Program-made: the position numbers and the translations under genes
Notes under the pieces: generated by a model
Databases searched by the model: none
Seen by the model: only the letters and a program-made list of their open reading frames with translations
Told to the model about the DNA's origin: nothing
Source: Epithemia pelagica
Taxonomy: Eukaryota > Protista > Bacillariophyta
Direction of reading: 5' to 3'
DNA: 64,000 nucleotides
Assembly (NCBI GenBank): GCA_946965045.2
Contig: OX337240.1
Span: 3,162,001 to 3,226,000 of the forward strand
Part shown: positions 11,196-64,000 of the stretch, piece after piece
Numbering within the stretch: the first letter of the stretch is position 1
How the letters are laid out: every line of letters starts with the position of its first letter

Positions 11196-11605
11196 GGTCG
11201 AAACGCAAAAACTCGAAACACGAAACACAAGAAACACGAAACGCAGCATTCTCCTCAGCCCTCAGCTCACATTCCAAAAAAAATCTTGAGCTCACATACT
11301 AAAAAACGGTGAAGTTTTGGTATGTGGGCTGAGTTACTTAAGGATTTGCGTGCCAGTTTTGCGATGCGTGCGCGTTTTCGGAGAGGGAGGCGTGTTTCGC
11401 GCGAGGTCTGCTCCGAAAATCGTCCATTTTCTCGCTCTCTCACATTTTCGAGGTACTTACAAACTGATAATCCAACACGCAACACGAGCACGCAACACGG
11501 AAGTGGTCATTGATACCAATAACTGACAAGAAATACATTCAATAAAATGGATTGCTGTTATAAATAGTCAAGTTACATGCATTTTGATGATAAATGGAGA
11601 TTAGA

Positions 11606-14949: not shown

Positions 14950-15221
14950 TGAGGGTGGTTCAAGTAAACCCTAAAGCGTCCGGATGCAGCTCAGCAACAA
15001 GGTACGCGGTTGGGATGGCCCTCCACCATGGTCGTTAGACAACAACCGTTTTTTCATCATTTTCGACGGAATTCTAGCGTTCGGAAGCTGTCACACATCA
15101 CGGTACGAATAAAAAATTTATTATTCAGACACTGGGTTGTCACGAGTCGGGCACTTTCATTCACTAGTCAGGCCAAACGCTATTGAGGATTATATTTTAT
15201 GGTACTAAATCTACGAGGGGT

Positions 15222-15641: not shown

Positions 15642-16946
15642 TCAGGATGATTTGAATTCTTGTGTATGCAACTCCGATTCACCTTCTGAATCCGTGGTTG
15701 ATTCGTCATCAAACATACTGCCAGAAGCATGAAGATTAAGAACCAGCTGGAGTATATGTGGCATGTCTTTGCAACTCGTGGCCCATACCGAGAGGACCAC
15801 GCCATCTTCGTCTCGTTCTACTTTACCCTCTTCGTTACGTTCAAGTCGCGTCGTTGACAGGAGAGAAACTCCAAGGAAGTGTCGGAGGGATTCCCATGCT
15901 TGAAAAGCTTCTGGGAGTTCCTTTTCTACATGTCCAGGGTTTGAGGTGTGCCAAACGCAGAGGCAGTCAACAACAAAATCGCCAACCATTGTCGACAAAG
16001 CAGAATCAGGATATCGATCCACCTGAGGCATTCGCTCAAGAGTGAAATACCAGCGATCGGCATTGTCAAACAATTTGCACCGAAAGGCATCTGCATTTAT
16101 GGACACCATACCTTCTTCAAGATGACTCTGTAGGGATGCCAGGCGTGATACTGGAGCCCTGGGGCTGGTCAAGAAATTGGTATGGATAGCGCTGAATTGC
16201 TGTTTGAAATAATGATCCAAGGAATAACTTTTGTCCTTATTCCACTTCCAGACAGCAACAAGGACGCTTAGGGCCACAGCATCGCCAAATGGTTTGGACA
16301 TTCCGCCAAAAGTCAAGGGTGTGGGCATCTTCGCGACAACAGTCTCTGCAACGCGGAAAGCATACGTGAAATCGTCATTGTCACAGCAAAATAAAGCCGA
16401 GCAATTGTTAACTTTCGCAGTTCGTCCCCTTAGTTTTCGATTCCACCTTTTCTGCGGTTCACTTTCTGTCGTCGTTTCGTCATTGTTTACATAGAAACCG
16501 TCGAGAGCAGCCACAGCAAACTGGGCGTGGCAGATATCAAACACCGTAAGGGCGGACGCCTGAGAATACCCCAATTCCTGGAACAAAATCTCTCGTCCGT
16601 CACAATGTAGCTTTCCGCAATTTCCATGTGGATAACTTGCTCCTGTGATGATGCGTAATGCACATGGTGGAACATTCCAAATTTCTTGTACGCCCGTAGC
16701 TCGAGAACAGACTGCTTTAAAGTATTCATGATATCCCATCGGAAAGTACGGTCTATCATCACTCCTCTCATTGGCAAGTTCATTGGGGCTAACCTTGACG
16801 GCGTCGGGATCACGAATGATTGCAAGGTTCACCGTAAAGTCGACCTTCTCGGCGGGGATATTCAACGCAAACGGCGTCATCGCAATGCCATAGACGAAAT
16901 ATGTCAAGTGCACTCTCCAATCACGATCATCGCTGCAAGCACTCAT
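15642..16946 (-). CDS. Hypothetical protein, possibly continuing in further exons toward 15290
   Basis: 434-aa ORF with globular composition; no recognised motif. Confidence 0.5.
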   Translation of the reverse strand: MSACSDDRDWRVHLTYFVYGIAMTPFALNIPAEKVDFTVNLAIIRDPDAVKVSPNELANERSDDRPYFPMGYHEYFKAVCSRATGVQEIWNVPPCALRIITGASYPHGNCGKLHCDGREILFQELGYSQASALTVFDICHAQFAVAALDGFYVNNDETTTESEPQKRWNRKLRGRTAKVNNCSALFCCDNDDFTYAFRVAETVVAKMPTPLTFGGMSKPFGDAVALSVLVAVWKWNKDKSYSLDHYFKQQFSAIHTNFLTSPRAPVSRLASLQSHLEEGMVSINADAFRCKLFDNADRWYFTLERMPQVDRYPDSALSTMVGDFVVDCLCVWHTSNPGHVEKELPEAFQAWESLRHFLGVSLLSTTRLERNEEGKVERDEDGVVLSVWATSCKDMPHILQLVLNLHASGSMFDDESTTDSEGESELHTQEFKSS

Positions 16947-17289
16947 GTAGGAGGAAGAATGTGAAGGAGCTCCACCTGTTCGCTTGAGATATCACCTCTG
17001 TATGATGGCTGTGGCTTCACTTCGCTTGACGGTCCACTCTTGAGAAAAAAGGGAATAGTCTATTCTTCCAGCTCCGTTATAGGGTATACTCAATGTATAC
17101 TAAATTCACGATAACTTCGGATAAGGAGGCAACTTGAGGCAACCGAGGTGATCAAGCTCTTTGCAACAAGTTGGCTGTGTGTTGTACTAGTACGCAGAAG
17201 ACAATACGAGTTGCTTTGGACAACTTTCTTCTAATGTGAGCTTTTACCTAGAATGGCTGTGGTTGATTCCCTAAGTATTTTCCCCTTTT

Positions 17290-18810
17290 TTGGCATGTTT
17301 TAGTACAAGAACTCCCAACGAAGGTTGTACTTACACCTTCACTAAGCACCCGAGACGACTTCTCCCAGAGTTCAAGAAATTTCTCTCCTTCTTGCTCCAC
17401 AACAACAACAAGCTTCTACATTTCAAAACAGATCTTCCCTCTGTATTGGCTAAGTTGTGTTTGGAGACTGTGGAGTCGGTTCAACACCACACAACAGTGA
17501 TGACCTACTGCACTGGTCGGGTCCTTCGGCAACAAGAGAGTTCACAGCAATTCTCTCTATGCAGTCCATCATATATTGCAAGTATGATGGCATCAGTGCT
17601 TACCATACTGCGGGCCAGTATTTGTTCTCTAATATACTCCATGGGGACTGGTTACCACGAGAGGGCTATGACCTTGGTCGAGAAGGCCCAACAGTCCATC
17701 ACAACCAATTTTTTGGGTAGCATGATCCGCCGGATGCGGGAAAAAGAGATTTTGACTCCATCTAGCCGAAAAGTCTCTATTCAGGGAAATAAAGACATTT
17801 TGGTTGACAACTTCAGGTTTCCTTTCCCGAAGTGGTGCAAGGTTATCCCGACAATCTACGATGCATGCATGCAAGCCTTGTGCAAAGTCATTGTTGGGAA
17901 TCAATGGGTCTTTCTCCTGGACAGGAGATATGGTATGGAAGTGTCGTGGGACTCTGTTGGGAAGGTACAGATGACACTACATTCCGCATCCAGGAGTTAC
18001 ACCCATGGAGATATTGCACTCTGTCAAGACTACGATTCATACCATTTGGACATTGTTGCATCATACCTAGAACTGGCCTTCCACGGAACAGGCCTTGGCT
18101 CCATGAGGTACACTGAAGTTGAGAGGTGTTTATTTTCAGATACACGGTGGCATGGTTTGAGTTTCTATTACTACTCGCACTCGGACAAAAGCTTCACTGC
18201 GATGGACAATAAACACCGCAAATTGGTCGAGCATAAACTTTGTGAGTCATTGAGCCGGATTTATCTTGTCTTTCGGGTGGTTGGTCAATTGCGTGGTACT
18301 TCCCTTCGTCCTCTTGTCCCTGTTCGGAGTGGACGTGTCTTCATGATGTCGGATGCAGTGGCTGCTATCTATGGGTTGGAAGGTCGACCGGATTGTATCC
18401 AGATACGACATGTTTGGACATCGGTTTCCAATATCCTGTTCCCCGATGTTGATGAAACCAACATTCACAATCAACATACAATTCAGGCAGTGGCGGAGCA
18501 GTCAGGGCATAGCTACAAAACACATCGGGACCACTACAGCTCATCCAATATCAGTTCAAAAGAGGAGTTATTCAGCATATACCACCGAGCACTTGGGGAA
18601 AATTATGTTGGAAAGGAAAGTGGCATGCCTCGATGCCTGACTGAAGATCATATACTACAGACACTACAAAAGTTGTTTGGGCCAAGTGCCAGCTACCTCA
18701 GCAGAGAGCAAGAATCGATGATACTCTTTTCGTCAACTGAACGCAACAAACATGGTCATTTTGGTTTGCCGTGTGGGGGAGGAAAATCACTCTCCTGGAT
18801 TCTGCCCTAA
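17290..18810 (+). pseudogene. Internal fragment of the recombinase-helicase gene: complete YR-like domain to helicase Walker A, truncated at CCCTAA
   Basis: LELAFHGTGLGSMRYTEV (Arg), HSDKSF (Lys), IQIRHVWTS (Arg), AEQSGHSYKTHRDHY (His, Tyr), then GLPCGGGKSLSWILP with the stop supplied by the junction TAA. Colinear with the 60228 ORF. Confidence 0.75.
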
Positions 18811-19296
18811 GGATATTTGCCTTTTTTGGGTGTCTTTAGTACTAGACACCGTAGGATTTGAACGTGTGCATATGAGCACAAGGGGCTATAGTATCTGTGC
18901 ATATGAGCACTGATATATATGCCTTTTGTTGCAAAAGAGCACTGCCCCTTGTGCAGATGAGCACAGAATGTCTATGCCCCGCTCAAGTCTAATTTCTAAG
19001 CACTCATATTCAATATGAGTCCTTAATTTCATTCATTACTAACCATTACCGCACTCTTAGTTGTTCCCCCATTCTTTGGCGCAAAAAGCTCGCCTGCGTG
19101 CCCCTTCGCGCCAAACATCTTCACCTGAAAACCTCAATAGGCCCAACATCTTCACTTGAAAACCTCAATTGGCCCAACAAAAGGTCATTGTTGTTTCATG
19201 AATTATGACTCTTGCAAAGAGTCCCATCCTTGCTTTTGCTTGAGAGTCGGCTGGTTATGTCTCTTCCTCTGTTCCATGCACACGAGGAAACCAGCA
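18805..19296 (+). repeat. About 490-bp upstream (left) end of the helicase element, repeated near-identically at 20975, 22674 and 26098
   Basis: Near-identical taaggatatttgccttttttggg...gtgcatatgagcac...cacctgaaaacctcaat(a/t)ggccc...ccagcaATG in four copies; diverged homologues at 17269, 21505, 21936 and 25027. Confidence 0.9.
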
Positions 19297-19680
19297 ATGG
19301 CTACCAACAATGGGCCTGGAACGCCATCTCCATCCCGGAGACGGCCTGTGAAGAAGATCCGTTCCGATCTGGGCATTGGCTTGTCATGTTTAGATGCTAC
19401 AATTGTGACACCCTTTGGTATGGGATGCGGCATATGCAAGAAATCATTCGGAGAAAGTCTTTGGTCCATGCAGCGGCATCTAAATCAACATGGAGTCTAT
19501 GTCTCAGCAACTGACAACCGACTCCTTGTCGCAAGAAAACAGTCCCTTGAGCAAATTTTGCAAGAAGACCCTCATACCGCAAAAAACTTCTTCACGGGGA
19601 GGTCTGTTCTTGGATATTCCTGCAGGTGTCTTGTTGGTTGGACAAGACTCAGCAATGTTATGCGTCATCTCTCCTCAAAA
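19297..19680 (+). pseudogene. 5' fragment of the recombinase-helicase gene (N-terminal C2H2-like fingers)
   Basis: MATNNGPGTPSPSRRRP...TPFGMGCGICKKSFGESLWSMQRHLNQH...YSCRC; matches TPCGLVCKLC...RH of the 60228 ORF. Confidence 0.7.
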
Positions 19681-19792
19681 TTTCCTGTGAATGACCTGCA
19701 TTGGGCCTTTTTGTCTTGAAGATTTCCTGTGAATGACCCTGCATTGGGCCTTTTTGTCGTGCCCATTTCGACCATCCAGCTGCAAACCGACA

Positions 19793-20977
19793 ATGGCAGC
19801 AAATCCTACTGCTGATCCTAAGTTGGAGCTGTTTGATCCCTTAAGTGGGAAGGCCTTTCGGGGTCATCATGGTCTCCATGTTTCCCACTATGGTGTTTTC
19901 TGTGTGGAGTGTCGAATGTCTGTGGCGAGCTCACCTTCATCCCTCCAACGCCACCTCAAGAAACATCCAAGCTGGGAGCTCATCATCTCCCTTCAAGATT
20001 TGAAGAATCTGTGTTCTAAGCACATTGAAGAATTAAAACACAATCAAGATATTACAATCAGCCACCTACGAATTCAAGATGGCTACAAGTGTTCTTGCGG
20101 CAATTTGTTCAAGGAACAAAGGTACCTGAAGAACCACTGTCGATACAACGGGGCATGCCAGTCATCAAGTGCTACAAAAATTAAGGCTGTTGTAACTGTT
20201 TGTTTCAGATTTGTTCATGTGGATTCGAGTCATCCTTCAGACGATTGGAATATCCATAATACAGAGACCATCCTTGAAGGGTTTGCTTCCCCACGTGGTG
20301 GTCTCAAGACATACTGCCAATTATTCCACGGACTGTGTTTGTCCCATCGAGAAGACTTTTTGAAAAAAATGACTGAGATGATAGGTTGGGCGAATCAAAA
20401 GAGCCAAACCAAGACCATGAACCTATGTTGTGTGCACTAGTGTCTGACTCTAGTGTTTGGTTGGAGTCTCATGTCAGACTCCATTTCAGTCGAACACCTG
20501 GGAATTTCCGAGCAGGGTTGATGGTCTTTGATGGTTCGGATGTTGACGAGGTTAGCCAAAACACAACATTTGTGTTCAGAGAGAACAATGATGTGGTTGG
20601 GAGGGAACTCAAGAAATTGTTGTGTTTTCTCTTTCGGCAAGACATCAACAACAAGTGGCATGACCGGATTCATGGCGAAAAGGAAAAGAAGAAAGAGTCT
20701 GTTCATGAAATTTTGTAGGGCCTGTTGTTGGATACTATGTCGAATGTCATGGATGATGCGATGGTTGTTGTTTACTGTCTGAGTCGGATGCTCAGAATAC
20801 ATCAAGATAAGGGACTGAAGTTTGTTTCACCTGGGTATTCAGCCAGTATTTGCTCAGATGTTCTTTGCTTGTTGCGAGGGGCAGTGTGTTCGGCTATTGC
20901 GGACTTTGTCGACAATGTCATTCCGCAGGCCACAGCATTGGTGAAACAAGTCCGACAAAGTTCTGTACTACATACCC
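19793..20977 (+). pseudogene. Divergent 5' half of the recombinase-helicase gene with a frameshift (about 20420) and a stop (20716-20718), cut at CCCTAA
   Basis: YGVFCVECR...LQRHLKKH, YKCSCGNLF..H; RELKKLLCFL and SPGYSASICSDVLCLLRGAVCS align by eye with the 17290 and 60228 ORFs. Confidence 0.7.
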
Positions 20978-23166
20978 TAAGGATATTTGCCTTTTTTGGG
21001 TGTCTTTAGTACTAGGCACCATAAGATTTGAACGTGTGCATATGAGCACAAGGGGCTATAGTATCTGTGCATATGAGCACTGATATATATGCCTTTTGTT
21101 GCAAAAGAGCACTGCCCCTTGTGCAGATGAGCACAGAATGTCTATGCCCCGCTCAAGTCTAATTTCTAAGCACTCATATTCAATATGAGTCCTTAATTTC
21201 ATTCATTACTAACCATTACCGCACTCTTAGTTGTTCCCCCATTCTTTTGGCGCGAAAAGCTCGCCTGCGTGCCCCTTCGCGCCAAACATCTTCACCTGAA
21301 AACCTCAATAGGCCCAATATCTTCACCTGAAAACCTCAATTGGCCCAACAAAAGGTCATTGTTGTTTCATGAATTATGACTCTTGCAAAGAGTCCCATCC
21401 TTGCTTTTGCTTGAGAGTCGGCTGGTTATGTCTCTTCCTCTGTTCCATGCACACGAGGAAACCAGCAATGGCTACCAATAATGGGCCTGGAACGCCATCT
21501 CCATCCCTAAGGATAATGCACTTTTTTTTGCTGACTTGTACAAGGACCCGTAGAAATCTACTGTTGCATATGAGCAACAATTTCCACAGTAGATTGTTGC
21601 ATATGAGCATTTTGTTGCGGATGAGCAGCCATTTTGTTAAGTATTGTTGCGGATGAGCAGATAGCTTGCCTGTGCCCCCCCCCTAGATTTAGTTCCTAGC
21701 ACTCATATTGAATATGGCTACTTGTTTTCTTTGACTACTAGCCATTACCGCACTCTTAGTTGTTTCCCATTCGTCTGGCAGGAAAAGCTCACCGGTGTGA
21801 CCCTTCGCGCCAAAAATCATTCGGAAGTAAAGGTCATTCACCTGAAAATCTCAATAGGCCCAACAAAAAATGACCATTCGTTGGTGTGTAAATCAGACCC
21901 AATGCAATTCTGCAAAGAGTCATTAGTAACAACGACCCTAAGGAAATTTAGGTCTAGATTCTAGTTTTTGTACCAGAGCCCGTAGCTTTCTACAGGTTGC
22001 ACTTGAGCTGCATATTTTGCACATGAGCTCCCATAGGTACAGCTAGGTATCATTACGAGCTGTTGGACTCCCAACCCACGCGCGAGCCTAGCCTTTGGCC
22101 AATCTCCACCGTCTCAGAAACCAAATTTTACTAAAGGGCTAAACTGTGGAAGTGTTTTTTATTAAATATAAGAACCCGAGCATCCAATTTTTCACCAAAA
22201 CCATCCGATCCAACTTAGGATGCCTTATCAACAGCAATGCTCAACCTGTCACTCTGATGTAACTATCCAATCTGTTAGAGTAATAACAATTCTACTGCAC
22301 TGTATAGTTACATCAGCACCAGCGCACCTCCAACGATGCTCATTTTCGCTCCCAAAACTGGCCTTCACGCTCGCAGCAAAATATGAGGACGAACCTCCAC
22401 AGTCAGTCGGCCTACTCGATCGCCCACCCCACCCAACATTTATTTCTATACATACTTGAATACAGCATTTCCCACGAGTCGCAGGTCAATCGTTGTTCAT
22501 TCACTAATTTCAATTGGGAAACCTCGTTTGGGCCTCTCTTCCGAAAGGAGCATCCGATGACCCCAACTTGTCGAAATTGACGATGTATCATGGATTGCTC
22601 CTCCATCTCACCACATAACACGTAATCCCCTTGCTGAAGCAATCTTTGTATACAGACCGACCCGTTGGCAAGTCCTTAAGGATATTTGCCTTTTTTGGGT
22701 GTCTTTAGTACTAGGCACCGTAAGATTTGAACGTGTGCATATGAGCACAAGGGGCTATAGTATCTGTGCATATGAGCACTGATATGTATGCCTTTTGTTG
22801 CAAAAGAGCACTGCCCCTTGTGCAGATGAGCACAGAATGTCTATGCCCCGCTCAAGTCTAATTCCTAAGCACTCATATTCAATATGAGTCCTTAATTTCA
22901 TTCATTACTAACCATTACCGCACTCTTAGTTGTTCCCCCATTCTTTTGGTGCGAAAAGCTCGCCTGCGTGCCCCTTCGCGCCAAACATCTTCACCTGAAA
23001 ACCTCAATAGGCCTAACATCTTCACCTGAAAACCTCAATTGGCCCAACAAAAGGTCATTGTTGTTTCATGAATTATGACTCTTGCAAAGAGTCCCATCCT
23101 TGCTTTTGCTTGAGAGTCGGCTGGTTATGTCTCTTCCTCTGTTCCATGCACACGAGGAAACCAGCA

Positions 23167-23442
23167 ATGGCTACCAACAATGGGCCTGGAACGCCATCTC
23201 CATCCTGGAGACGGCCTGTGAAGAAGATCCGTTCCGATCAGGGCATTGGCTTGTCATGTTTAGATGCTACAATTGTGACACCCTTTGGTATGGGATGCGG
23301 CATATGCAAGAAATCATTCGGAGAAAGTCTCTGGTCCATGCAGCGGCATCTAAATCAACATGGAGTCTATGTCTCAGCAACTGACAACCGACTCCTTGTT
23401 GCAAGAAAACAGTCCCTTGAGCAAATTTTGCAAGAAGACCCT
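23167..23442 (+). pseudogene. 5' fragment of the recombinase-helicase gene; related fragments at 21468-21507 and 26557-26827
   Basis: Near-identical to 19297 onward; ends at GAAGACCCT|AAGG. Confidence 0.75.
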
Positions 23443-23486
23443 AAGGAGAAAGTGCTCGTCTGTAGGCCCTCGTAGACTCTGTACTG

Positions 23487-23640
23487 CATATTTTCCCACC
23501 TGGGAGCAGCCCCTGTCTCATATTTTCCCACCTGGGAACAGCCCAGCCTCATATTTTCCCACCTGGGAACAGCCCTCGTCCTCATATTTTCCCACCTGGG
23601 AACAGCCCCTTTCTCACTGTAGAGCAGCCCACCTTCCCCA
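23487..23640 (+). repeat. Subterminal tandem repeat (catattttcccacctgggaacagccc, about 5 copies) in a downstream-type element end
   Basis: Read directly. An analogous gtcccactgcagaacagcc array lies at about 26868-26990, with a short version at 24970-25029. Confidence 0.8.
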
Positions 23641-24158
23641 TATTTTCCTATTTGGGGTCGTATTCCCCCTCTGTTGTACAGCCCTCATCCCCAATATACT
23701 CCCAAGCCCATACATATTAAAGCTAGGATTTCCTAGATATAAGCTAGATCTATACACATGACTATCGATAGTATTAATTTTCTTCACTTGAAGATCTCAT
23801 TTTTTGGTCATTGGGCCCAACACCAGTCATTCTGTTCAAGATTTCTGGTGAATGACCCTCCTTTGGGCCTGTTGTCTTTGGGTATGTTTTCGCACAAGAA
23901 TCATACATGGATGACTCGTCACATTCTGCTGGGTGACTTCATAGTTCCTCCTGCCGTGGTACATGCATGTTTGATTGTTGCCAACACACACCTCTATCAG
24001 CAATCAACCAGTATTGTGAATCTATGGTGAGTGCTTGATACCGAAAGCATCTATGATTCATCATTCTCGATTCCTATTTCTAACATCAGCTACTTTCTAC
24101 TATTCACATTGGCACACAGGAAGGAGTTGAACGAGGGAATGTCACATGTCAGCTCCAG

Positions 24159-24926
24159 TCAAGTCTCTTCCAGGCTTGCTGCAGGTCTCGTTCTCTTGTG
24201 GACATGAAAAATAAGTCGCTTCAAGCGCCTTTGAAGTGGGCAGTCTCTGGGCCCATGAGGAACATAGCCTGGTCTGTTGAAGGGCTCGAAACAGGCAAAA
24301 CAGGCTTTGTTCTTGAGCACCCGAGAAACACTCACCGGACATTTACTTCTTCGGTGGTTTGTTGATCCACAGTTGAAACAGGATCCATAGTCAAGGCACT
24401 TCTCCCCATTGCATGTTGCATCCATGCAAACAACACATTGAACAATCAAACGTTGGATGCACTCTTCTGCCATGGACGATTCAATGTCTTGCCGTCTGAC
24501 TCTTTCAACTACTTGTGTCTGTCCACTCTCTTGGGCCTTTTTCCTGCAGAAATCGCAAACCCCACAATGTGTTACACGAATGCCAAACTTCTGTGAAATA
24601 TTTGCAACACGACAACCATGCTCTTGCAACCAATTTTTTATGGAAGCTGATCCAAATATGGCTTCGAAGCTTTTCCTTGGCCGCTCTCCAACAATCAACC
24701 GTTTTGCCTGAGGCGTCTTCAGGGTCATGTCCTCGTCCATGTCCCCTCTCTGAAAACCTGTTGGGTACAATAAGGTGAAACTTCCATTATTCTTTCGCTG
24801 GCTTGGTCGTAGTCGGCCAATCGCTTGTACATCGTTCATCAGTCTATAAATCAATCCACATACGATAACATGCCGACACAGGTCATTTTCAATTCCGCAG
24901 AGACCACATGTTGTTGATATCAACAC
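24159..24926 (-). pseudogene. 3' fragment of the helicase gene (motifs V-VI, RecQ-type Zn module, Zn knuckle), inverted relative to neighbouring fragments
   Basis: LISTTCGLCGIEND, VQAIGRLRPSQR (compare VQSMGRLRPSQR at about 63490), CRVANISQKFG..CGVCDFC, CFNCGSTNH, CPLQRRLKRL. Confidence 0.75.
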
Positions 24927-25677
24927 CCTAAGGAGAAAGTGCCTGTCCGTAGGCCTATGTAGACTCTAGCGTCCCACTGCAGAACAGCCCCCATCCCACT
25001 TGTCCCACTGCAGAATCGCCCTCTATCCCTAAGGATATTTCACTTTTTTGGGAGCTTTTAGTACTAGAGACCGTAGAATTTGAACGTGTGCATATGAGCA
25101 CAAAATCCTATAGTGCCTGTTGCATATGAGCAAGGATTTGTTGCGGATGAGCTGCAATTTGTTATGCTTTTGTTGCGATTGAGCAGTGGCCTTGTCTATG
25201 CTCCTTTGACCACTCCCCAAAAGCAGTCATATTCAATATGCTCTATACTGGCCAGATACTTTTCAGAGCTCTGCCAGCTAGGTTTTTGTCTTGCCCTACT
25301 CTACATAGAAGAATCAACGTAAGATTGAATTTCCTTTGGTTTGCTGTACACAATTTCCTTGTTACAACAAACCAGCTAATATGTGTGTACAAGTGACATA
25401 TATTTGTACACAAATGACCAACTAACTTTTTTGTACAATCTTTTTTCCTGCCAAATGACGCTGGCATTTCATAGAAAAATCTCATTTCACCCATCACTAG
25501 TTCTCATCAAAATCCCATTTTGACCATTCCTAGTTTATGCCTCTAGGTCTTTGTACCTACCCATCATTCGTCCAGTAAATTGGGCCCAATGCAATTCTGC
25601 AAAGGGTCATCACTCCCTTTCTTTGATGAACGATGAAAGATGTCTCTTGAACACTCTCAGCAAAACCTCTATCAACC

Positions 25678-26100
25678 ATGGCTTCCCCCTCTAATAATGG
25701 GCCAGGGACTCCTTCTCCATCAAGGAGGAGACCAACGAAGAAAAAAAAGGAAGAGGACAAACTACAGGCTGTCGATGTCACGCTAGTGACCCCCTTTGGT
25801 ATGGGATGTCGCCTATGTGGGAAACCGTTTGGAACCAGTCTATGGTCCATGCAAAGGCACCTTAATGGCCATGGTGTGTCTGTCTCACATTCTGAAAGCC
25901 AGACACTGATAAAACATCAAATGACCCTCCTTCAAGGTGTTATGCAAGACATTTCAAGTGTTTCTCAATCTATGACGGGGGAAAAGGTCAAGTGCTATTC
26001 ATGTCATTGTCTTGTTGGGAGCTTGAAACTTCAAAATGTGTACAGACATTTGTCCTCGGGTCGTACCTGCAGTGCTCCCTCCCCTACAGAAGAGGAACTA
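25678..26100 (+). pseudogene. 5' fragment of a second subfamily of the recombinase-helicase gene
   Basis: MASPSNNGPGTPSPSRRRP...TPFGMGCRLCGKPFGTSLWSMQRHLNGH; truncated at the CTAAGG junction. Confidence 0.7.
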
Positions 26101-27227
26101 AGGATATTTGCCTTTTTTGGGTGTCTTTAGTACTAGACACCGTAGGATTTGAACGTGTGCATATGAGCACAAGGGGCTATAGTATCTGTGCATATGAGCA
26201 CTGATATGTATGCCTTTTGTTGCAAAAGAGCACTGCCCCTTGTGCAGATGAGCACAGAATGTCTATGCCCCGCTCAAGTCTAATTTCTAAGCACTCATAT
26301 TCAATATGAGTCCTTAATTTCATTCATTACTAACCATTACCGCACTCTTAGTTGTTCCCCCATTCTTTGGCGCGAAAAGCTCGCCTGCGTGCCCCTTCAC
26401 GCCCAACATCTTCACCTGAAAACCTCAATTGGCCCAACAAAAGGTCATTGATGTTTCATGAATTATGACTCTTGCAAAGAGGCCCATCCTTGCTTTTGCT
26501 TGAGAGTCGGCTGGTTATGTCTCTTCCTCTGTTCCATGCACACGAGGAAACCAGCAATGGCTACCAACAATGGGCCTGGAACGCCATCTCCATCCCGGAG
26601 ACGGCCTGTGAAGAAGATCCGTTCTGATCAGGGCATTGGCTTGTCATGTTTAGATGCTACAATTGTGACACCCTTTGGTATGGGATGCGGCATATGCAAG
26701 AAATCATTTCTGTCTTTGGTCCATGCAGCGGTATCTAAATCAACATGGAGTCTGTGTCTCAGCAACTGACAATCGACTCCTTGTAGCAAGAAAACAGTCC
26801 CTTAAGTAAATTTTGCAAGAAGACCCTAAGGAGAAAGTGCCTGTCCGTAGGCCTACGTAGAATCTAGCGTCCCACTGCAGAACAGCCCCAATCCCACTTG
26901 TCCCACTGCAGAATCGCCCTCTGTCCCACTGCAGAAGTGCCCTGTCCCACTGCAGAACAGCCTGCTGTCCCACTGCACAACAGCCCACTAGAACAGCCCT
27001 ATTCTAGTCATACCTATGCCCATGCTTATTAGTTATTCCTAGCTCGACTAGTTTCATTTCCCGTCACTACAAGTGTGACTGGGTCAGATTCTTGTGTGAA
27101 ATGACCCTTCTTTGGGCCTAATATTTTTTTGTGAGACGTGATTAGATTTTTTGTGAGATGACTCTTCTATGGGTCTTTTGATGATGGTCTTTAACCCGAC
27201 ACACAGTACCTACTAACTTAATACTAT

Positions 27228-27491
27228 CTACTTGAATGCTTTCTTTGCATATGGATTCCTTGGTAGAGCTGGTCGTGCCACAGACGGTCTGGCTGCTGTG
27301 GTTGCATGAGGTGTCTGTGTCACTGTCATGCCCATCCGTTGTTCAACACTCTGACACAGAAAAGCATGAAACGAATGGCTGTCGCATGTTACTTCGGACA
27401 TGAAATCAGTCATTGCTCTGGATTGTCCATTGGTCTTCCTTGACTCATATACATCGATCATCAGCCGCTTCAATCTTCGTTGTAAAGGACA
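27228..27491 (-). pseudogene. Extreme C-terminus of another helicase copy
   Basis: CPLQRRLKRLMIDVYE...RNPYAKKAFK matches CPLQRRLKRLIFHVH of the 24159 ORF. Confidence 0.65.
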
Positions 27492-30400: not shown

Positions 30401-31773
30401 TTGTGGAACCAACCGGGTAATCAGATCAAAGAAATTATCTTGATGGTCTTGGGAATCATCTTGAATCATGTCGTCAATCCATGCACGACCAGGGTCGGGA
30501 TCAGGTTCCGGCTCAATGTCAAGAGTATGCGTCTGTTCCATGCATGCAGTTGTTGATGACAGATTCTGGGTAGACTTGTTGTACGCAATGATTACTTGAC
30601 GACTATTGTCGTTGAGTTTACTCCACAGATCTCTTGGAAGACTGATCTTTGGACGAAGCGAAGATGATTTCTTGGTCTTCACGTTAGTTCTCTTAATCAT
30701 GCGGTGTTTTTCTTTGGGTGATAGATCTTTGATATCAAAATCTTGATCATATTGAAAGTCGCATTGCTTGGTATGCTTAAGTCGGTTAGACTTTGGTGCT
30801 CGAGTTGCTTGGTCATGATCATATGCGGCATCAAGGAGAAGACGGAAATATGATTGATAACAAAGTGTCTTTGCACCAGACAAGATGTTGACTTGTCGTA
30901 AATCAGGTACCTTTTCAACGGCTTTCATCAGGAAGGTCATCCTAGTGGAGTGGCCAGGAATGTGATCAAACATTGATCCCAGATTGTCGAGAAGATGGAA
31001 TTGGTGTTGAAAGTGGAGAAGAAACTGATAGGTTGTGCCGTGCCATGAATCATCGAGACAAAGATTGGAGATGTAGTTGTTAAGACGTAGCACCTCTCTT
31101 TTTGCTAAACAAAATGACGAAATGCAACCTTGGTTCAGACGGAGCTTGGTGAAGTCTGCATTGATTCTCCAATGATCATAATTGGCCTTGGTGAGGTTCA
31201 ACCAGGTAGAGCGAGGTAAATCAGACTGCTGCAGGGTTGAGTTTGTTCTCGTGACCAATGTGCTAGGATCTTCAGTTGATGCCTTGTAAATGTCTTCAGA
31301 TCCATCGTCTTGTTCCCATACTTGTATTGTCCAAGGTCCTTGATATTCTTTTCTGGATTGACTGCAAGATAGTCGATGACATTCAGAATGTGTTCGAAAC
31401 CACTATGTTTTATCCATTGATGAAGGGCTTGAGCTCGTTCTTCATCACATTCAAATAGATGCTGGGTGATATGATTGAACACTTGTGTATCTGATATGTC
31501 AGGCGGTACTGAGTCGTCAGAAGGAAGAGAAGGTGTCTTGGGGTATGTTGGATCCATGGTAGTATATGGTTGGTTCGTTGTTTATTTAATGTGTGGTGTG
31601 ATCTGAACCCAGATGTACCACGTGTGTGCCACGTATATCAGTACCCGGATGTGTGTTGTGCTGGGAACCCGGATGTGTGGAACTCGGTTTTGTCTCTGGT
31701 TTGTTGTGGAAACTACTTAAAGATACTTATCCTTGGTCACTTTCGGACTTGTTGCGGTGATCGAGTTGAACCG
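27492..31773 (-). mobile_element. Degenerate CoDi-like (Ty1/Copia) LTR retroelement, copy 1; its LTR continues at 54965-55278 beyond the Plavaka insertion
   Basis: gag-like ORFs 31198-31557 and 29636-31258; integrase remnant PYLQDQNMAENRYQTVKR; ILVDWETG..YEP and IKYKFGYQV motifs in 28221-29581. Near-identical to copy 2, but lacks 34 bp at about 28590 and one 9-bp unit. Confidence 0.7.
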
Positions 31774-54964: not shown

Positions 54965-55278
54965 CGGGGAGTCAGGAATAATGGTAGCTTCCTCGTCTTG
55001 CTCGTAGTCCTCAGCAAAGTACTGGTCAGGTGAGTATTGGGAGGTAGTTGCACGAAGTCCTGGTCCAGCTTGAGGTCCTGGAATAGGAGAGGGTTGATGA
55101 CCCTAGCCTTAGCCAGGCTGGCCCTGTTGTTGGGTTGGGTAGCTTTGTCCTCTAACTCTTGTTTGTTGGTGTAGCTCAATCTGTACTCAATGTAGATGGG
55201 TAAGTATGATCTCCAATGCGACTGCAGGGCAATGAGCGATGAGACTGTTAATCTGATAAACTTCTCTCGATTCAACAG
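54965..55278 (-). repeat. Putative LTR shared by the two CoDi-like copies (about 320 bp including 31764-31773)
   Basis: Minus strand begins TGTTGAA (55278) and ends ...TTCAAC(T); 54967-55105 recurs at 59582-59720. Confidence 0.55.
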
Positions 55279-58200: not shown

Positions 58201-59720
58201 GTCACAACTTGTGGAACCAACCGGGTAATCAGATCAAAGAAATTATCTTGATGGTCTTGGGAATCATCTTGAATCATGTCGTCAATCCATGCACGACCAG
58301 GGTCGGGATCAGGTTCCGGCTCAATGTCAAGAGTATGCGTCTGTTCCATGCATGCAGTTGTTGATGACAGATTCTGGGTAGACTTGTTGTACGCAATGAT
58401 TACTTGACGACTATTGTCGTTGAGTTTACTCCACAGATCTCTTGGAAGACTGATCTTTGGACGAAGCGAAGATGATTTCTTGGTCTTCACGTTAGTTCTC
58501 TTAATCATGCGGTGTTTTTCTTTGGGTGATAGATCTTTGATATCAAAATCTTGATCATATTGAAAGTCGCATTGCTTGGTATGCTTAAGTCGGTTAGACT
58601 TTGGTGCTCGAGTTGCTTGGTCATGATCATATGCGGCATCAAGGAGAAGACGGAAATATGATTGATAACAAAGTGTCTTTGCACCAGACAAGATGTTGAC
58701 TTGTCGTAAATCAGGTACCTTTTCAACGGCTTTCATCAGGAAGGTCATCCTAGTGGAGTGGCCAGGAATGTGATCAAACATTGATCCCAGATTGTCGAGA
58801 AGATGGAATTGGTGTTGAAAGTGGAGAAGAAACTGATAGGTTGTGCCGTGCCATGAATCATCGAGACAAAGATTGGAGATGTAGTTGTTAAGACGTAGCA
58901 CCTCTCTTTTTGCTAAACAAAATGACGAAATGCAACCTTGGTTCAGACGGAGCTTGGTGAAGTCTGCATTGATTCTCCAATGATCATAATTGGCCTTGGT
59001 GAGGTTCAACCAGGTAGAGCGAGGTAAATCAGACTGCTGCAGGGTTGAGTTTGTTCTCGTGACCAATGTGCTAGGATCTTCAGTTGATGCCTTGTAAATG
59101 TCTTCAGATCCATCGTCTTGTTCCCATACTTGTATTGTCCAAGGTCCTTGATATTCTTTTCTGGATTGACTGCAAGATAGTCGATGACATTCAGAATGTG
59201 TTCGAAACCACTATGTTTTATCCATTGATGAAGGGCTTGAGCTCGTTCTTCATCACATTCAAATAGATGCTGGGTGATATGATTGAACACTTGTGTATCT
59301 GATATGTCAGGCGGTACTGAGTCGTCAGAAGGAAGAGAAGGTGTCTTGGGGTATGTTGGATCCATGGTAGTATATGGTTGGTTCGTTGTTTATTTAATGT
59401 GTGGTGTGATCTGAACCCAGATGTACCACGTGTGTGCCACGTATATCAGTACCCGGATGTGTGTTGTGCTGGGAACCCGGATGTGTGGAACTCGGTTTTG
59501 TCTCTGGTTTGTTGTGGAAACTACTTAAAGATACTTATCCTTGGTCACTTTCGGACTTGTTGCGGTGATCGAGTTGAACCGGGGAGTCAGGAATAATGGT
59601 AGCTTCCTCGTCTTGCTCGTAGTCCTCAGCAAAGTACTGGTCAGGTGAGTATTGGGAGGTAGTTGCACGAAGTCCTGGTCCAGCTTGAGGTCCTGGAATA
59701 GGAGAGGGTTGATGACCCTA
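55279..59720 (-). mobile_element. Degenerate CoDi-like retroelement, copy 2; LTR truncated by the helicase element at CCCTA
   Basis: ORFs 59006-59365, 57435-59066 (gag and integrase remnant) and 55986-57380; no intact RT or RNase H. Confidence 0.7.
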
Positions 59721-62700
59721 ATAGTTTTGCTAGGAATTGACCTTTTTCCGGTGCGCACTAAGTTCACTCTGTAGAATCACATGCGCGACCGGAAAAAGGT
59801 CGATTTCAAATCACTGTATTGCTGCGTGCTATATTTAGTGCGACCGGAAAAAGGTCGATTTCGACCGGAAAAAGGTCGATTTCAGAACCTACATTAACTC
59901 TCCATAGTAAACCATATTCCTTCTTGTCGCTCAAAGATTTTGAGGTGAATGATCTCTGGTGTTAGGGCCTTTTCAGTTTTTGAGGTGAATGACCCTCTTT
60001 AGGGCCTCTTTTTTGGCTGCAAAGGGTCATACGTTTCAGAACCTACATTAACTCTCCATAGTAAACCATATTCCTTCTTGTCGCTCAAAGATTTTGAGGT
60101 GAATGATCTCTGGTGTTAGGGCCTTTTCAGTTTTTGAGGTGAATGACCCTCTTTAGGGCCTCTTTTTTGGCTGCAAAGGGTCATACGTCCCAAACCTATT
60201 TTGACCATAGGAACGACAACAGCCACCATGGAGTTTGACGATTACTTGGGGCTTGTGGACTTTGCCACACCCTGTGGCTTGGTCTGTAAACTCTGTGGTG
60301 TTGGTTTCCGAGCAAACATGAAGTGCCTTGCTCGTCACGCCAAGACTTGCTCTGAGGTTCATGCAGTGTCATTTCGGTTCCCTGGAAGACATCTTGGAAA
60401 AAAGATACACGACTTGGTGGAGAATGCCAACAACCAACCGTTTGATTGTTTCATACACGAGTCCAAGGAAACAGATATCAAGTATTTCTGTGGTCACTGT
60501 GACAAGATGTTTCACAAGAAGCTTTTGTGCGAGAAGCACACTGCTGGTTGTTGCAACAATGCTGAAGTGATTCCGAAGACCTTCCACAAGCTGAAGTGTG
60601 GATGCTTCATGCCAAGGCCCCAAAGAGAAACCATGCAGCAAAAAACCAACTGGACCCCAATAATTCAAGTTGAGAATTCAACATTTACCATGCCGTTGCC
60701 CTGCAGCAGGTTACCCAACGAGTTTGCAAGTTCGATTGAACCATTATTGCATCCAAGCGACACTTTGGGAAGGTGGCCCGATGTACTGAGTAATATGATT
60801 CCTGGCACGTTGGAGAATGCCCTTGGAGACATTGAACAAGGAATTATGTTTGAAGCCGAGTATCATAAGAGAGGAAATAACACTGCAATCAACCGACTCT
60901 ATCAGGTTGGTTGTTACCTTCTGGACAGAGTGGCTTCGATCGTAATGGGGATTCCAGCAGACATTCGGAGTCGGATTGCTAAGTTTGATTTCCATGATGG
61001 TGATGTGGATCACTCATGGAATTTCAGCCATCGACATGATTATGACAAACGAGTGAAACCTCTACTCCTCTCTCTCTTGTGTTTCCTGCATCAGAGGCAG
61101 TGGAAGAGATGGAACTATTTTTGCCGCCAGGTTGAAGGTGATGGATTCTCTGTGGACACTGCATTCCAAAATTGTGTTCTTGGGTCACTCCTGACAGAGT
61201 TGGTACTCGACAGTGAGATTTCTTGTTGGTCCGACTCAGGGGTAGTGTTACTGTTCTCTCGGCAGAGGTTGTTCACTAAGACGAAGAATGGCTTGAGGTT
61301 GAAATCATGTGGAGTTGCCGCTCAAGAACTCGGTGAGTCCCCCTTTCCCCCTGTCAATGAATATACTTGGTTGTTCAAATCTCATGTCTTCTTTCATCTC
61401 TTTCTAGCTGACCTTTTACATCTGCTTCGCTGTGGGGTTGCGGCTGGCTTAAAATACTACGATGGGCAGGGCAAGTTGGTCGAGCAGGTCATGGAACGGT
61501 ACAGACATTGTCCTACAATACACTTTCTCTGTCCTAAGATTTATTCTTTGAGGAAGCAATATCAAGAGAAGCCTCCTAAAAGGGAGGTTGTGGTCGATGA
61601 GTTCTTCAATATCATTGTTGATGGACATGCATTCCAAAAAGCACATTGGTCTAAGGTCGTTCCTACGGTTGTGGAAAAGGCCCACGGTATTTTTGATGCA
61701 TGCTTTGTCGGAAAGGCATACGAGAAATTCCTCTGCTTAGATGGTGACTTGACTATTGTGGAGTGGTCCAAGGGTTTGGGATCGCTGCCAGATGGTACCA
61801 ACACACAAGATTTGGAATGCAAGGAACTGGTGAAAAGTCAGTTCGAACGACTAACTGCCTTGATGGAATTTGCCATCCATGGTTTTGGCTGTGGTGCAGA
61901 TCGGTTCTCAGAGGTCCATTGTCTCGATGTGACTCAGCTTCGGTGGAAAAATACAAACTACCAAGATTTATATGTTTCTGCACCGAGTCGTAAACAACCC
62001 AAACTGCAAGCTGATGATCGACCCCCTGTTGAACACAAGATGCCTCGGATCATAGCAAGGTGTCTATTTCTCTACAGAGTTGTGGTGCTGAAAGTTTGGA
62101 ATGGGCCCAATGCAAGGAGATTTTTTCCACAATATGGTAATGACCGGAGGTTTTTCTTTGAGGATGTTGCCCAAGAGATTTTCAGCTTGGATAGTCGTCC
62201 TGGTTCAGTGGTTGTTCGACAGTTCTGGACTTCTCTTGTGAACTTGCTCTTTCCAGACAGCAACAGTCAGGCATTGGTCTCTTCAACAGCATTGAGTGAG
62301 TTGAGTAAGCACTCCCAACAGACTGCAATGTCCAACTACCAGACACGCGTGAGCAACAGTCATGAGATCTACTATGCCCGATTTCATCGTTACATCGGTA
62401 CCAAATGTATGATCGTGGACTCGGTATGCCATCAGCTGACAATAACAAGCCGTCAGCATCGGTTAGAAGCATTACGATTGTTGTTGGGTGATGAAGAAGC
62501 AACATTCCGAGGCAATCAAGAAACAGCAATTGATATGTGCACCAATTCACCGGGAAGACATAAACTTATGCTTCAACCTTGTGGATCGGGCAAAACCATG
62601 AACATCTTGGTGCGTTGTGTGGTGGAATCCATTCGAGGACTGAAGACTTCGACCAACATGTTTCTTGTGCCCTACAACTTCTTGGCTAGCTATCAAATGG

Positions 62701-64000
62701 TCAAAGTCAAAGCCTTCTTGGAAAAGGCATCACAAACTTTGGGTTTGCATGATGGTTTATGTGTCGAGATGTTGGCAAAGAACGATCTATGTCATGAGAA
62801 TTGGCCCAACTGGTTTGCACGGGATGACTTGCCCGAAGTCATAGTGATGACAATCGATGGATTTGCGACCTTCTTCAAAGACCATCTAACAAAACTTTCT
62901 GGATGGTGCTCCAATGGAAAGTTGAATGGGATTTTTGTCGATGAGGCACAAACCATCGTTACAGAGGTCGACTTCCGTCCATGCTATTCTTGTCTACGGG
63001 AAATATCTGCACTTGGAGTCGCCGTAACACTGATGTCTGGAAGTATTTCGATGAGTTTTGGTCAGAAATTGATGGACTTCCTCGATTTGAGTGGTTCTGC
63101 ATATCACGGATTGTCGGATTATCTCTCGGGAGAGAACCCAGTTGGTGATGGATTCGACTTACATGTGAGATATGTACAAAAATCTGTTGGGGCAGATGTC
63201 GTTGACATTGTGACTGAGAAGACCATGCGACATGTCCACGTGATTTGTGCAAGCAAGGATATGGTTTTGGAGGTTTATGAAGCACTGTGCTTATCTCATC
63301 CTGGCTTGAATGTTGAGAAGTTAACTTCGGAGAGTGAACAACAGGTTAGAGATGGCGTGGCATCTTCCTGGGCAGACGGTACTACAAATATTCTTGTGGG
63401 AACGACCTGTACCTTGGTCGGTAATGAGAATCAAAGATGCAGAACAATCATGATCATTGGCATGTTGTATGATTGCTCAAATGTTGTACAGTCCATGGGA
63501 AGACTAAGGCCGTCACAACGTGGAAATAATTCTTCTGTCCATATTCTAATCCCGTTTCAAGACTTCAACAATGATGGGGCAATCCGGGTAAAGACTAAGA
63601 GACGTTTGGACTATCTGAGAGAAATTGGTTTGCTCACGAATGAGGAAAGCCTTGACTGTGTTACTGACTGCTTCACAATGCATGGATTGAAGATGTGGTT
63701 GACTAAAGAGGGATGTATGAAGACAAACCTCTGTCGTTGTTTCGAATATCATACAGAACACCAGTGTGGGCGGTGCACCAACTGCTGGAAAGGAATTCTG
63801 TGGATATATGATGGAAATTCAACCAGTGACAATGACGGCAAACGAAAAAGACATGCCAAAGATATTGAGCAAGGTGGCCAAAATGTGATACGAAGAACAC
63901 TCTTGGAACCAAGTACAATGTCTAAAAAAGCTATTCCATGTGCTACTGGTGCTATACAGCCACTTGCTAAAAAAGGTCGGGTTCCAAATCCATATGCAAC
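59716..64000 (+). mobile_element. Recombinase-helicase element (left end plus gene), continuing beyond the window
   Basis: Begins CCCTAATAGTTTTGC. CGACCGGAAAAAGGTCGATTTC repeats at about 59740-59883; 154-bp direct duplication (59881 / 60035) containing GTGAATGACCCT...TTAGGGCC. Confidence 0.75.
60228..64000 (+). CDS. Zn-finger + tyrosine-recombinase-like + RecQ-like SF2 helicase (telomere-linked-helicase-like), 3' incomplete
   Basis: I translated a stop-free frame from ATG 60228 to the window end, with a probable in-frame 75-bp intron at 61333-61407. Motifs CKLC..RH, CGHCDKMFH; GCGADRFSEV, SRK, VVRQFWTS, SKHS..AMSNY; FRGNQ, QPCGSGKT, VDEAQ..FRPCY, LMSGS, ILVGTT, QSMGRLRP, C..NL..F..CGRCTNC. 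Confidence 0.85.
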   Translation, partial: MEFDDYLGLVDFATPCGLVCKLCGVGFRANMKCLARHAKTCSEVHAVSFRFPGRHLGKKIHDLVENANNQPFDCFIHESKETDIKYFCGHCDKMFHKKLLCEKHTAGCCNNAEVIPKTFHKLKCGCFMPRPQRETMQQKTNWTPIIQVENSTFTMPLPCSRLPNEFASSIEPLLHPSDTLGRWPDVLSNMIPGTLENALGDIEQGIMFEAEYHKRGNNTAINRLYQVGCYLLDRVASIVMGIPADIRSRIAKFDFHDGDVDHSWNFSHRHDYDKRVKPLLLSLLCFLHQRQWKRWNYFCRQVEGDGFSVDTAFQNCVLGSLLTELVLDSEISCWSDSGVVLLFSRQRLFTKTKNGLRLKSCGVAAQELGESPFPPVNEYTWLFKSHVFFHLFLADLLHLLRCGVAAGLKYYDGQGKLVEQVMERYRHCPTIHFLCPKIYSLRKQYQEKPPKREVVVDEFFNIIVDGHAFQKAHWSKVVPTVVEKAHGIFDACFVGKAYEKFLCLDGDLTIVEWSKGLGSLPDGTNTQDLECKELVKSQFERLTALMEFAIHGFGCGADRFSEVHCLDVTQLRWKNTNYQDLYVSAPSRKQPKLQADDRPPVEHKMPRIIARCLFLYRVVVLKVWNGPNARRFFPQYGNDRRFFFEDVAQEIFSLDSRPGSVVVRQFWTSLVNLLFPDSNSQALVSSTALSELSKHSQQTAMSNYQTRVSNSHEIYYARFHRYIGTKCMIVDSVCHQLTITSRQHRLEALRLLLGDEEATFRGNQETAIDMCTNSPGRHKLMLQPCGSGKTMNILVRCVVESIRGLKTSTNMFLVPYNFLASYQMVKVKAFLEKASQTLGLHDGLCVEMLAKNDLCHENWPNWFARDDLPEVIVMTIDGFATFFKDHLTKLSGWCSNGKLNGIFVDEAQTIVTEVDFRPCYSCLREISALGVAVTLMSGSISMSFGQKLMDFLDLSGSAYHGLSDYLSGENPVGDGFDLHVRYVQKSVGADVVDIVTEKTMRHVHVICASKDMVLEVYEALCLSHPGLNVEKLTSESEQQVRDGVASSWADGTTNILVGTTCTLVGNENQRCRTIMIIGMLYDCSNVVQSMGRLRPSQRGNNSSVHILIPFQDFNNDGAIRVKTKRRLDYLREIGLLTNEESLDCVTDCFTMHGLKMWLTKEGCMKTNLCRCFEYHTEHQCGRCTNCWKGILWIYDGNSTSDNDGKRKRHAKDIEQGGQNVIRRTLLEPSTMSKKAIPCATGAIQPLAKKGRVPNPYA

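Follow-up and report, generated by a model that had tools for sequence, protein, structure and literature searches.

Polar, one-ended joins of helicase-encoding elements at chromosome ends of the diatom Epithemia pelagica

The Y' elements of Saccharomyces, which encode a helicase, lie next to telomeres in short tandem arrays and are amplified when telomerase fails. In Drosophila, HeT-A, TART and TAHRE form polar head-to-tail arrays at chromosome ends through repeated terminal addition and erosion, and in the Athena-type endonuclease-deficient Penelope-like elements (Athena, Coprina) the attachment end uses complementarity to the telomere repeat. TLH regions are found in fungi (M. oryzae TLH1, U. 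maydis, S. pombe tlh1/2, F. oxysporum, B. cinerea) and in the choanoflagellate Monosiga. Their proteins carry two N-terminal C2H2 motifs (Cx2-3Cx8-14Hx3-5H, then Cx2-5Cx11-16Hx4-5H), a 'TLH domain' of ~250 amino acids (aa) and a helicase (bioRxiv 10.1101/2024.02.27.582403), and in M. oryzae the TLH region is bounded proximally by HAR-C (CCTAACC), a telomere motif in reverse complement (PMC1635262). Here we analyze a stretch of 64 kb from the diatom Epithemia pelagica (contig OX337240.1, positions 3,162,001 to 3,226,000; hereafter the window), which contains a dense array of fragments of elements that encode a recombinase-like domain joined to a helicase. We favor, with moderate confidence, the explanation that this stretch is a fossil stack of truncated, polar chromosome-end elements.

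The E. pelagica elements share with TLH regions a layout of gene, tandem repeats and telomere, as well as frequent terminal truncation, and their genes stand beside terminal telomere repeats and point towards them (related contigs L001 and L007; L004-L006 at contig ends), as is also seen in L010, from a distant relative. They differ from TLH regions in comprising at least eight diverged families arranged in polar stacks, with a precise one-unit head and microhomology junctions. The initial annotation of the window took the system to be undescribed in diatoms; this matches the papers that we could search, in which no such elements are reported from diatoms and TLH is unreported in stramenopiles or algae, but the architecture is that of the fungal and choanoflagellate TLH. 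The helicase gene, the adjacency to telomeres and the arrays also recall Y'. However, Y' copies are separated by telomeric tracts oriented like the terminal telomere and spread by homologous recombination, whereas here a single inverted unit marks non-homologous joins. The telomeric elements of Drosophila and the Penelope-like elements are retroelements attached by their 3' end and truncated at their 5' end; the present elements lack a reverse transcriptase, are usually attached by the 5' side of the gene and, except in one family (D), are truncated on its 3' side.

Three further kinds of DNA element invite comparison. Helitrons combine an HUH Rep nicking enzyme with a Pif1-type helicase and insert at AT/TT genome-wide. 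They resemble the present elements in having a helicase fused to a nicking enzyme, initiation at a fixed end, copies that are one-ended or read through, and no target-site duplication, but here there is no HUH domain. Oxytricha TBE1 encodes a DDE transposase, is bounded on both sides by terminal inverted repeats, duplicates 3 bp of its target and occupies internal germline loci; the likeness lies in its termini, which carry the host C-strand telomere repeat reading inward. Cryptons have a tyrosine recombinase as their only enzyme, without a helicase, and lie at internal loci with 5-6-bp direct repeats at both ends (PMC3212892). The similarity to Cryptons is a recombinase or recombinase-like enzyme and a crossover within a short shared sequence; the differences are the one-ended terminal joins, the helicase and the absence of a Pfam recombinase match.

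We use the term head for an element end that reads inward from (C)CCTAAG, and unit for its CCCTAA, which is an inverted telomere unit. Heads were located in the window by reading 17000-28000 and by self-BLAST. Eleven lie within 17269-26824 (17269, 18805, 20975, 21505, 21936, 22674, 23439, 24926, 25027, 26096 and 26824) and a twelfth at 59716, each being a site where unrelated sequence ends and a conserved element end starts. All 12 are on the + strand, which bears out the original description of a polarized array joined at a single CCCTAA-type unit. The heads fall into families A (four), D (three) and B, C, E and F (one each), plus the type at 59716; the unit is imperfect at 22674 (CCTTAAGG) and 26096 (AACTAAGG). 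The sequence CCCTAAGG occurs eight times in the window, always on the + strand and within 18805-26831, against an expectation of 0.94, and a count of eight was reached in 0/100 shuffles; no tandem (CCCTAA)2 array is present in the 64 kb. The fragments, with target overlaps where these could be read, are as follows (ORF, open reading frame; UTR, untranslated region):

17269..18804, + strand: fragment 1, 'F' family; head CCCTAAGT on unique host DNA; proximal boundary of the array
18805..19676, + strand: 'A' copy 1; head CCCTAAGG, four TGTGCATATGAGCA-like iterons, ORF start
19677..20974, + strand: piece of another family; internal 5'-UTR motif and N-terminal zinc-finger ORFs
20975..21504, + strand: 'A' copy 2; cut after 530 nt
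21505..21935, + strand: 'B' head; four TGTTGCATATGAGCA-like iterons; target overlap CCC (uncut copy at 19334)
21936..22673, + strand: 'C' head; begins CCCTAAGGAAATTT...; without an ORF
22674..23438, + strand: 'A' copy 3; head CCTTAAGG
23439..24925, + strand: 'D1' head, then C-rich iterons; target overlap CCCT (uncut copy at 19569, in common with 26824)
24926..25026, + strand: 'D2' head; 101 nt only, cut by the next head at CCC
25027..26095, + strand: 'E' head, iterons and N-terminal ORF 25678-26130; 98% identity to the telomere-terminal element of L001; target overlap CCC (uncut copy near 26923)
26096..26823, + strand: 'A' copy 4; head AACTAAGG; target overlap CTA
26824..27491, + strand: 'D3' head and iterons; target overlap CCCT (uncut copy at 19569); ends at a junction without a telomere unit
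54965..55105, + strand: uncut copy of the 141-nt target of the 59716 head; continues CCCTAGCC
59716..64000, + strand: near-complete element; head CCCTAATAG, four CGACCGGAAAAAGGTCG iterons, 154-nt duplicated 5' UTR; target overlap CCCTA (uncut copy at 55101)

The overlaps reported initially (CCC, CCCT and CCCTA) proved exact on re-check. To these we added junctions from related contigs, counting independent junctions whose uncut target reference has at least 96% identity (n = 14). The shared sequence is CCC in six, CCCT in five, CCCTA in two and an off-register CTA in one; thus the target shares 3-5 nt with the CCCTAA unit in 14/14 referenced junctions, where three or more matching bases would be expected by chance at about 1/64 per junction. 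At A copy 1 (18805), where the reference copy is divergent, the overlap is probably CC. Self-BLAST and the related contigs yielded neither a target remainder nor a target-site duplication for any of the 14 targets. The absence of a reciprocal right-hand junction extends from the window to the related contigs, in which no remainder of a cut target lies downstream, and the joins, one-ended and with 3-5 nt of identity, were correctly distinguished from ordinary nested insertion. The junction at 26824 is the same event as one in L004 (L004:4555). Two D subfamilies are joined at an identical family-A site (...GCAAGAAGA followed by CCCT), one at 23439 and the other at 26824/L004:4555. The 23439 junction may be a second hit at this site. 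Either the site is a hot spot used more than once, or the junction is old and its D part has since diverged or been converted; with ~7 A-targeted events, coincidence at one site is not improbable.

To recover truncated heads as well, we used the subterminal part of each head family (nucleotides 21-110) as query against all sequences. This returned 35 head copies, and in 35/35 the crossover lies inside the six-base unit. At most the first 2-3 nt of the unit are lost, with GCCTAA, TCCTAA, CCTTAA and AACTAA as variants. None of the 35 carries more than one unit. Within ~180 nt of this universal unit each family has its own set of 3-5 iterated motifs, and each attaches by one end only: upstream of the gene in A, B, E, F and the 59716 type, and downstream of it in D (at least six independent junctions). 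The D gene is on the minus strand, so its attached end adjoins the 3' end of the gene. The D protein forms a separate family with ~30% identity to the others, and at least eight families, at 25-30% protein identity, have the terminal unit in common. Two other accounts of D were rejected: that its fragments are inverted random chromosome ends, since the same defined D end recurs in at least six independent junctions, and that D is the right-hand inverted repeat of other families, since 0 full-length copies end in its reverse complement.

The position of the elements on chromosomes is seen in European Nucleotide Archive (ENA) analysis ERZ21939226, in which the window corresponds to contig ctg1087l (identical over 15.4 kb) and six further contigs carry the families of the window. 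Two of these, L001 (ctg1133l) and L007 (ctg803l), terminate in long (TTAGGG)n arrays, which identify TTAGGG as the host telomere repeat, as the initial annotation had required. Elements point outward at all five contig ends examined (L001, L004, L005, L006 and L007), which upholds their association with telomeres, and in 23/23 heads at those ends the CCCTAA unit is on the centromere side, with the head proximal and the truncated side distal. Thus the interstitial unit reads CCCTAA on the TTAGGG-3' strand, inverted relative to the terminal array. This polarity contradicts the first of two models originally offered (Model A), in which the head is the free end, capped by TTAGGG-3': heads are centromere-proximal at every contig end, and it is the tail or a truncated body that abuts the telomere.

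L001 has nine + strand heads, and its last element, of E type, is complete: the head at 15074 and the gene at 15723-19646 are followed by a ~2.7-kb tract (19650-22390) of a 178-bp satellite and then, from 22391 to the contig end, by more than 50 TTAGGG units. The same satellite forms the ends of L004 and L005, and L006 ends within a further element. The end of L007, turned to the right, reads host genes, D head, A head and an ORF broken by (TTAGGG)n, which was added inside the helicase ORF at 14653 (flipped), at about residue 955, after ...GGATATGCTAGGG; here an eroded chromosome end has clearly been healed. The sequences to which heads are joined vary, from the coding sequence of an earlier element to a long terminal repeat (LTR)-like repeat (59716) and unique DNA (L005, L007), and in L005 the DNA before the first head carries ordinary genes, one for a choline transporter and one for an EVE-domain protein. 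An element thus consists of a head (CCCTAA and family iterons), a body (one ORF) and a tail (the 178-bp satellite abutting (TTAGGG)n), and its joins are polar, one-ended and head-first at chromosome ends, with at least 3 nt of identity at the join and distal truncation. The satellite shows higher-order duplications, in which the final 60 nt of the ORF are included, and two protein families only ~26% identical have it in common, suggesting homogenization among chromosome ends. In L001 a GGG inside one of the satellite units is the point where the telomere begins.

The single protein of each element has ~1,260-1,420 aa (intact ORFs, 1264-1421 aa), with two N-terminal C2H2-like fingers, a recombinase-like domain, a superfamily 2 (SF2) helicase and C-terminal Cys-rich knuckles. 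Pfam recognizes DEAD and Helicase_C, and nothing else, in the 59716 ORF and in all full-length relatives; Rep/HUH, Pif1 and reverse transcriptase domains gave no Pfam match in six full-length proteins. The helicase has no sequence match in PDB, and relatives from the Joint Genome Institute (JGI) are labeled 'superfamily II DNA helicase RecQ'. In the fingers, C20, C23 and H37 and C88, C91 and H104 are invariant or nearly so (alignment A2); their spacing, read from the protein sequence, fits the published TLH patterns, and one protein, P0003, has a weak zf-C2H2_2 match (E 7e-5). The conserved domain upstream of the helicase also has the size and position of the TLH domain (~250 aa). An exhaustive HMMER search found 366 protein clusters, 112 of them below 1e-30, mostly of 1100-1600 aa and aligned over the helicase and the 400 residues before it. 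Across 32-33 homologues at 20-30% identity, seven residues before the helicase do not vary (G556, R559, K589, R664, H695, T699 and Y704); they lie within the local motifs GxGxGxxRxxE, SxK, RHxWTS and GHSxxTHxxxY. The order and spacing R-K-R-H-Y are those of the tyrosine-recombinase catalytic set, with an H-to-Y distance of 9, as in XerD and Cre.

The domain was modeled with AlphaFold2 (predicted local distance difference test score, 91.5; predicted template-modeling score, 0.88). When this model was compared with PDB by Foldseek, the top 37 matches were all XerH, Cre, Flp, XerA, XerD, TelA (protelomerase) or topoisomerase IB, with probabilities up to 0.98 and a best E of 0.09. The viral library BFVD gave mainly DNA_BRE_C proteins, integrases and topoisomerase I (best E 0.027, probability 0.99). 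Thus, of the recombinase-helicase proposed initially, the helicase stands by Pfam and the recombinase by fold and motifs only. The label 'recombinase-like' is to this extent supported, not proven.

In none of the stacks is anything distal to the crossover kept in the target; the distal side of older elements is missing, and the outermost element carries the telomere. Such a stack suggests DNA-based re-capping of ends that have lost their telomere. We envisage a cycle in which telomere loss and erosion would be followed by the head-first attachment of a new copy, complete with tail and telomere, and then by erosion again. Attachment would be catalyzed by the element's own protein. We favor this in view of how precisely the crossover is placed, the iterons particular to each family, the restriction of each family to one end and the conservation of catalytic-type residues; the recombinase activity of the protein is a proposal based on the modeled fold and the motifs. 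In this scheme the fingers or the N-terminal domain would read the iterons, and the recombinase-like domain would cut in the CCCTAA/TTAGGG unit, which would serve as a 6-bp overlap region. A strand swap of ~3 nt onto the C-rich 3' tail of a telomere-less end would then impose the CCC requirement, and the 3'-phosphotyrosyl end on the ...TTAGGG strand would be joined to the recessed 5' end of the uncapped chromosome. Finally, the helicase would unwind the donor, which would be copied to its end. Cre, Flp and lambda Int test a strand swap of ~3 nt before ligation. Intact G-overhangs cannot pair with the TTAGGG strand of the head, so only uncapped ends would be substrates. The second of the original models (Model B), one-ended strand transfer at CCC(TA) with copying towards the chromosome end, fits the observed polarity; its chemistry is as yet proposed only. 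Under Model B the system would be a DNA-based analogue of the Drosophila telomeric retrotransposons and would offer a mobile-element reading of TLH and Y'.

A number of results weigh against this explanation. As to the enzyme, the usual HxxR motif lacks a conserved His; the Foldseek matches have template-modeling scores of 0.3-0.37, and all their E-values are ~0.03 or higher; no member (0/33) matches Pfam Phage_integrase or another recombinase model; the recombinase-like domain found no match in PDB by sequence or profile; and its hhalign comparison with XerD, Cre and lambda Int is not significant (probability 0.35%). The single block aligned by hhalign is box I, with the R on XerD R148. As to the array, three of its junctions have no telomere unit (~17306, 19677 and 27491/27492), and at least 32 kb of other DNA separate the 17269-27491 array from the next head, so that the array is not terminal. 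The D-family gene is inverted relative to its head, which the favored model leaves unexplained, and no donor intermediate, whether free linear, circular or nicked, was seen. Lastly, overlaps of 3-5 nt can also be produced by host microhomology-mediated joining or break-induced replication (BIR).

The last point is the basis of a serious rival, which we nevertheless consider unlikely. Host repair would make the joins: the C-rich 3' tail of an eroded end would anneal to the TTAGGG-3' of a head, lying in a free linear copy or exposed by a break, and be extended by theta-type end joining or microhomology-mediated BIR, with the element protein acting as a telomere helicase only. Recipient and donor would thus exchange the places that they have in Model A. 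Microhomology-mediated repair typically leaves overlaps of 3-5 nt such as those seen, the off-register CTA among them; the telomere healed within the L007 ORF shows that ends erode and that host machinery repairs them, and the recombinase assignment is not statistically secure. We disfavor host repair mainly because generic end joining should often resect deeper, whereas the junction is within the six-base unit in every one of the 35 heads. In addition, the family-specific iterons and the use of one end point to a sequence-specific protein, the catalytic-type R-K-R-H-Y set is maintained across the 366 clusters, and with 0 heads having more than one unit, no telomere-capped free head is seen.

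Much less probable, in our judgment, is that these are not mobile elements at all but a host subtelomeric TLH-like gene family, spread by homologous recombination or BIR as yeast Y' is. Such a family would account for the telomere-adjacent position, the TLH-like architecture, the tail satellite common to families and the blocks common to several ends, such as the A-D junction found in both the window and L004. It does not account for heads that join unrelated sequence (unique DNA, an LTR-like repeat, coding sequence) with only 3-5 nt of identity, nor for the same terminal unit in at least eight families at 25-30% protein identity.

We give slightly less credence still to an ordinary two-ended, Crypton-like mode, in which circular copies would have integrated at CCC(TA) sites within resident elements and terminal deletions would then have erased every right junction. 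The tyrosine-recombinase-like domain would suit it, as would the use by Cryptons of short identical crossover sequences for integration (PMC3212892). Against this, downstream restoration is seen for 0/14 targets, and seven contigs yielded no right end at which the crossover sequence is repeated; the outermost elements lead into satellite and telomere rather than the rest of the target, and insertion would not give strict outward polarity at five contig ends. Chimeric assembly of a highly repetitive region is very improbable, for the junctions, known here from assembled sequence, are of a type that recurs in seven contigs of the assembly and in short-read metagenomes of other samples and species that were assembled independently, and one junction recurs in diverged copies (90-97% identity).

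The elements were recently active, and relatives of them occur in other metagenomes. Copies are 99.3-99.6% identical and have intact ORFs, and the ratio of nonsynonymous to synonymous substitution rates (dN/dS) is 0.3-0.4. A distant relative at 25% protein identity was independently assembled from three JGI samples (L002, L010 and L011); its three distinct upstream flanks converge on (C)CCTAAGGAAAACC, and the opposite contig ends have TTAGGG-containing repeats and arrays. A scan of metagenome contigs, with a profile from a closer subset of the alignment, added 27 loci, and in another lineage (L015, L016 and L018) three distinct short flanks converge on (C)CCTAAG. As the flanks of such diverged relatives converge on it, the head unit has been maintained over large distances and the adjacent sequence has not. 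Telomere arrays are mostly absent from the short-read metagenome contigs, as expected from assembly limits. In the distant relative a second conserved ORF, of 291 aa and unmatched in Pfam, separates the helicase gene from the telomere-like repeats (L002 5189-6064, L010 5207-6082, L011 5225-5518). The tail repeats of this relative have a composite GCTAGGGTTAGGGTTGAC unit.

We propose, tentatively and with less confidence than we place in the reading of the stretch itself, an unrecognized, widespread class of eukaryotic DNA 'terminal transposons', whose recombinase/topoisomerase-like enzyme, fused to a helicase, would attach a copy and a new telomere to telomere-less ends with one telomere unit as crossover sequence, with the TLH domain as catalytic domain, TLH regions as mobile elements or their domesticated descendants, and perhaps an ancestral relation to Y'. 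The protein plan is the one published for TLH, but homology with the fungal TLH is putative, a further point against our explanation; in the papers that we could search, the TLH domain is nowhere described as recombinase-like. Were the model correct, chromosome ends would have a third means of maintenance, DNA-based and element-encoded, beside telomerase and the telomeric retrotransposons, and the known range of the TLH/Y' phenomenon would widen to include algae and many uncultured protists (366 protein clusters). What TLH genes are for could then be tested directly, and the candidate catalytic domain offers an invariant tyrosine that can be mutated. The junctions themselves provide sequence-level footprints of the arrival of elements at chromosome ends: a precise head, a six-base crossover, at least 3 nt of identity, one-ended joins and outward polarity.

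Individual fragments of the window show further features. In the F fragment internal coding sequence follows directly after ~38 nt of head (at ~17306). The ORF of this fragment (17290-18810) extends from the recombinase-like domain as far as the Walker A motif of the helicase and is cut at 18804; the catalytic-type motifs R..E, K, RHxW and GHSxxTHxxxY are readable in it. The piece at 19677..20974, which has a weak OrsD/PF12013 match and a degenerate reading frame, joins A copy 1 without a telomere unit, and at this junction family A switches to an internal 5'-UTR motif of another family. No relative of the C-family fragment was found among the fetched loci. The D1 gene is represented on the minus strand by ORF 24159-24926 (the end of Helicase_C and a CCHC knuckle) and the D3 protein by its C-terminus, also on the minus strand (ORF 27228-27473, ...NPYAKK); 27491 is the true end of the last fragment of the array. 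The element at 59716 is apparently active. Its ORF is continuous and intact from 60228, is still open at the window end and matches residues 1-1257 of the 1421-aa protein P0007 at 98.8% identity. An intron in this ORF was considered and rejected, given that continuity. A gradient from older proximal to younger distal A copies was also set aside, being confounded by block duplication, as was a retroelement with a constant 3' end on the minus strand and 5' truncation, there being no reverse transcriptase and the ORF reading away from the head in most families. A short motif, GTGAATGACCC-N-(T)TGGGCC, is present in one to three copies in every family, in the 5' UTR (in D, the 3' UTR), with sites at 19100-19170, 19680-19760, 23830-23880, 27090-27180 and 59930-60180; one copy containing CCCT itself served as a target (L005:9643).

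Host genes of ordinary appearance, at 2524-4899, 8364-11249 and 47508-50528, flank the array and encode subtilase, SET-domain and RING-finger proteins. Those for the subtilase and the SET-domain protein lie left of the array, whose proximal surroundings are thus gene-bearing; the array itself starts on unique DNA at 17269. After 27491 come ~34 unassigned nt and then a 4.3-kb repeat, 27526-31773, that recurs at 55290-59581 (98.7% identity). An exact 141-nt repeat (54965-55105 = 59580-59720) flanks the second copy, and the 59716 head is joined inside it. The two ORFs of the 4.3-kb unit (540 and 334 aa) have no Pfam match. In L004, where the order of A-D junction, retroelement and 59716-type head is that of the window, a piece of this repeat adjoins an RVT_2 gene, and the unit is therefore probably part of a copia-like retroelement. 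The simplest reading would be that retroelements and other DNA lay distal to the old array, and that the end eroded into them and was then capped by the 59716 element. The sequence after 31773 resembles the reverse complement of that before 54965. Two tandem arrays, each at 90-97% identity, occupy 40594-43783 (170 nt, ~19 copies) and 50681-54023 (105 nt, ~29 copies); the latter has a strong G-over-C skew, with long ORFs overlapping on both strands, and may code for a 35-aa repeat.

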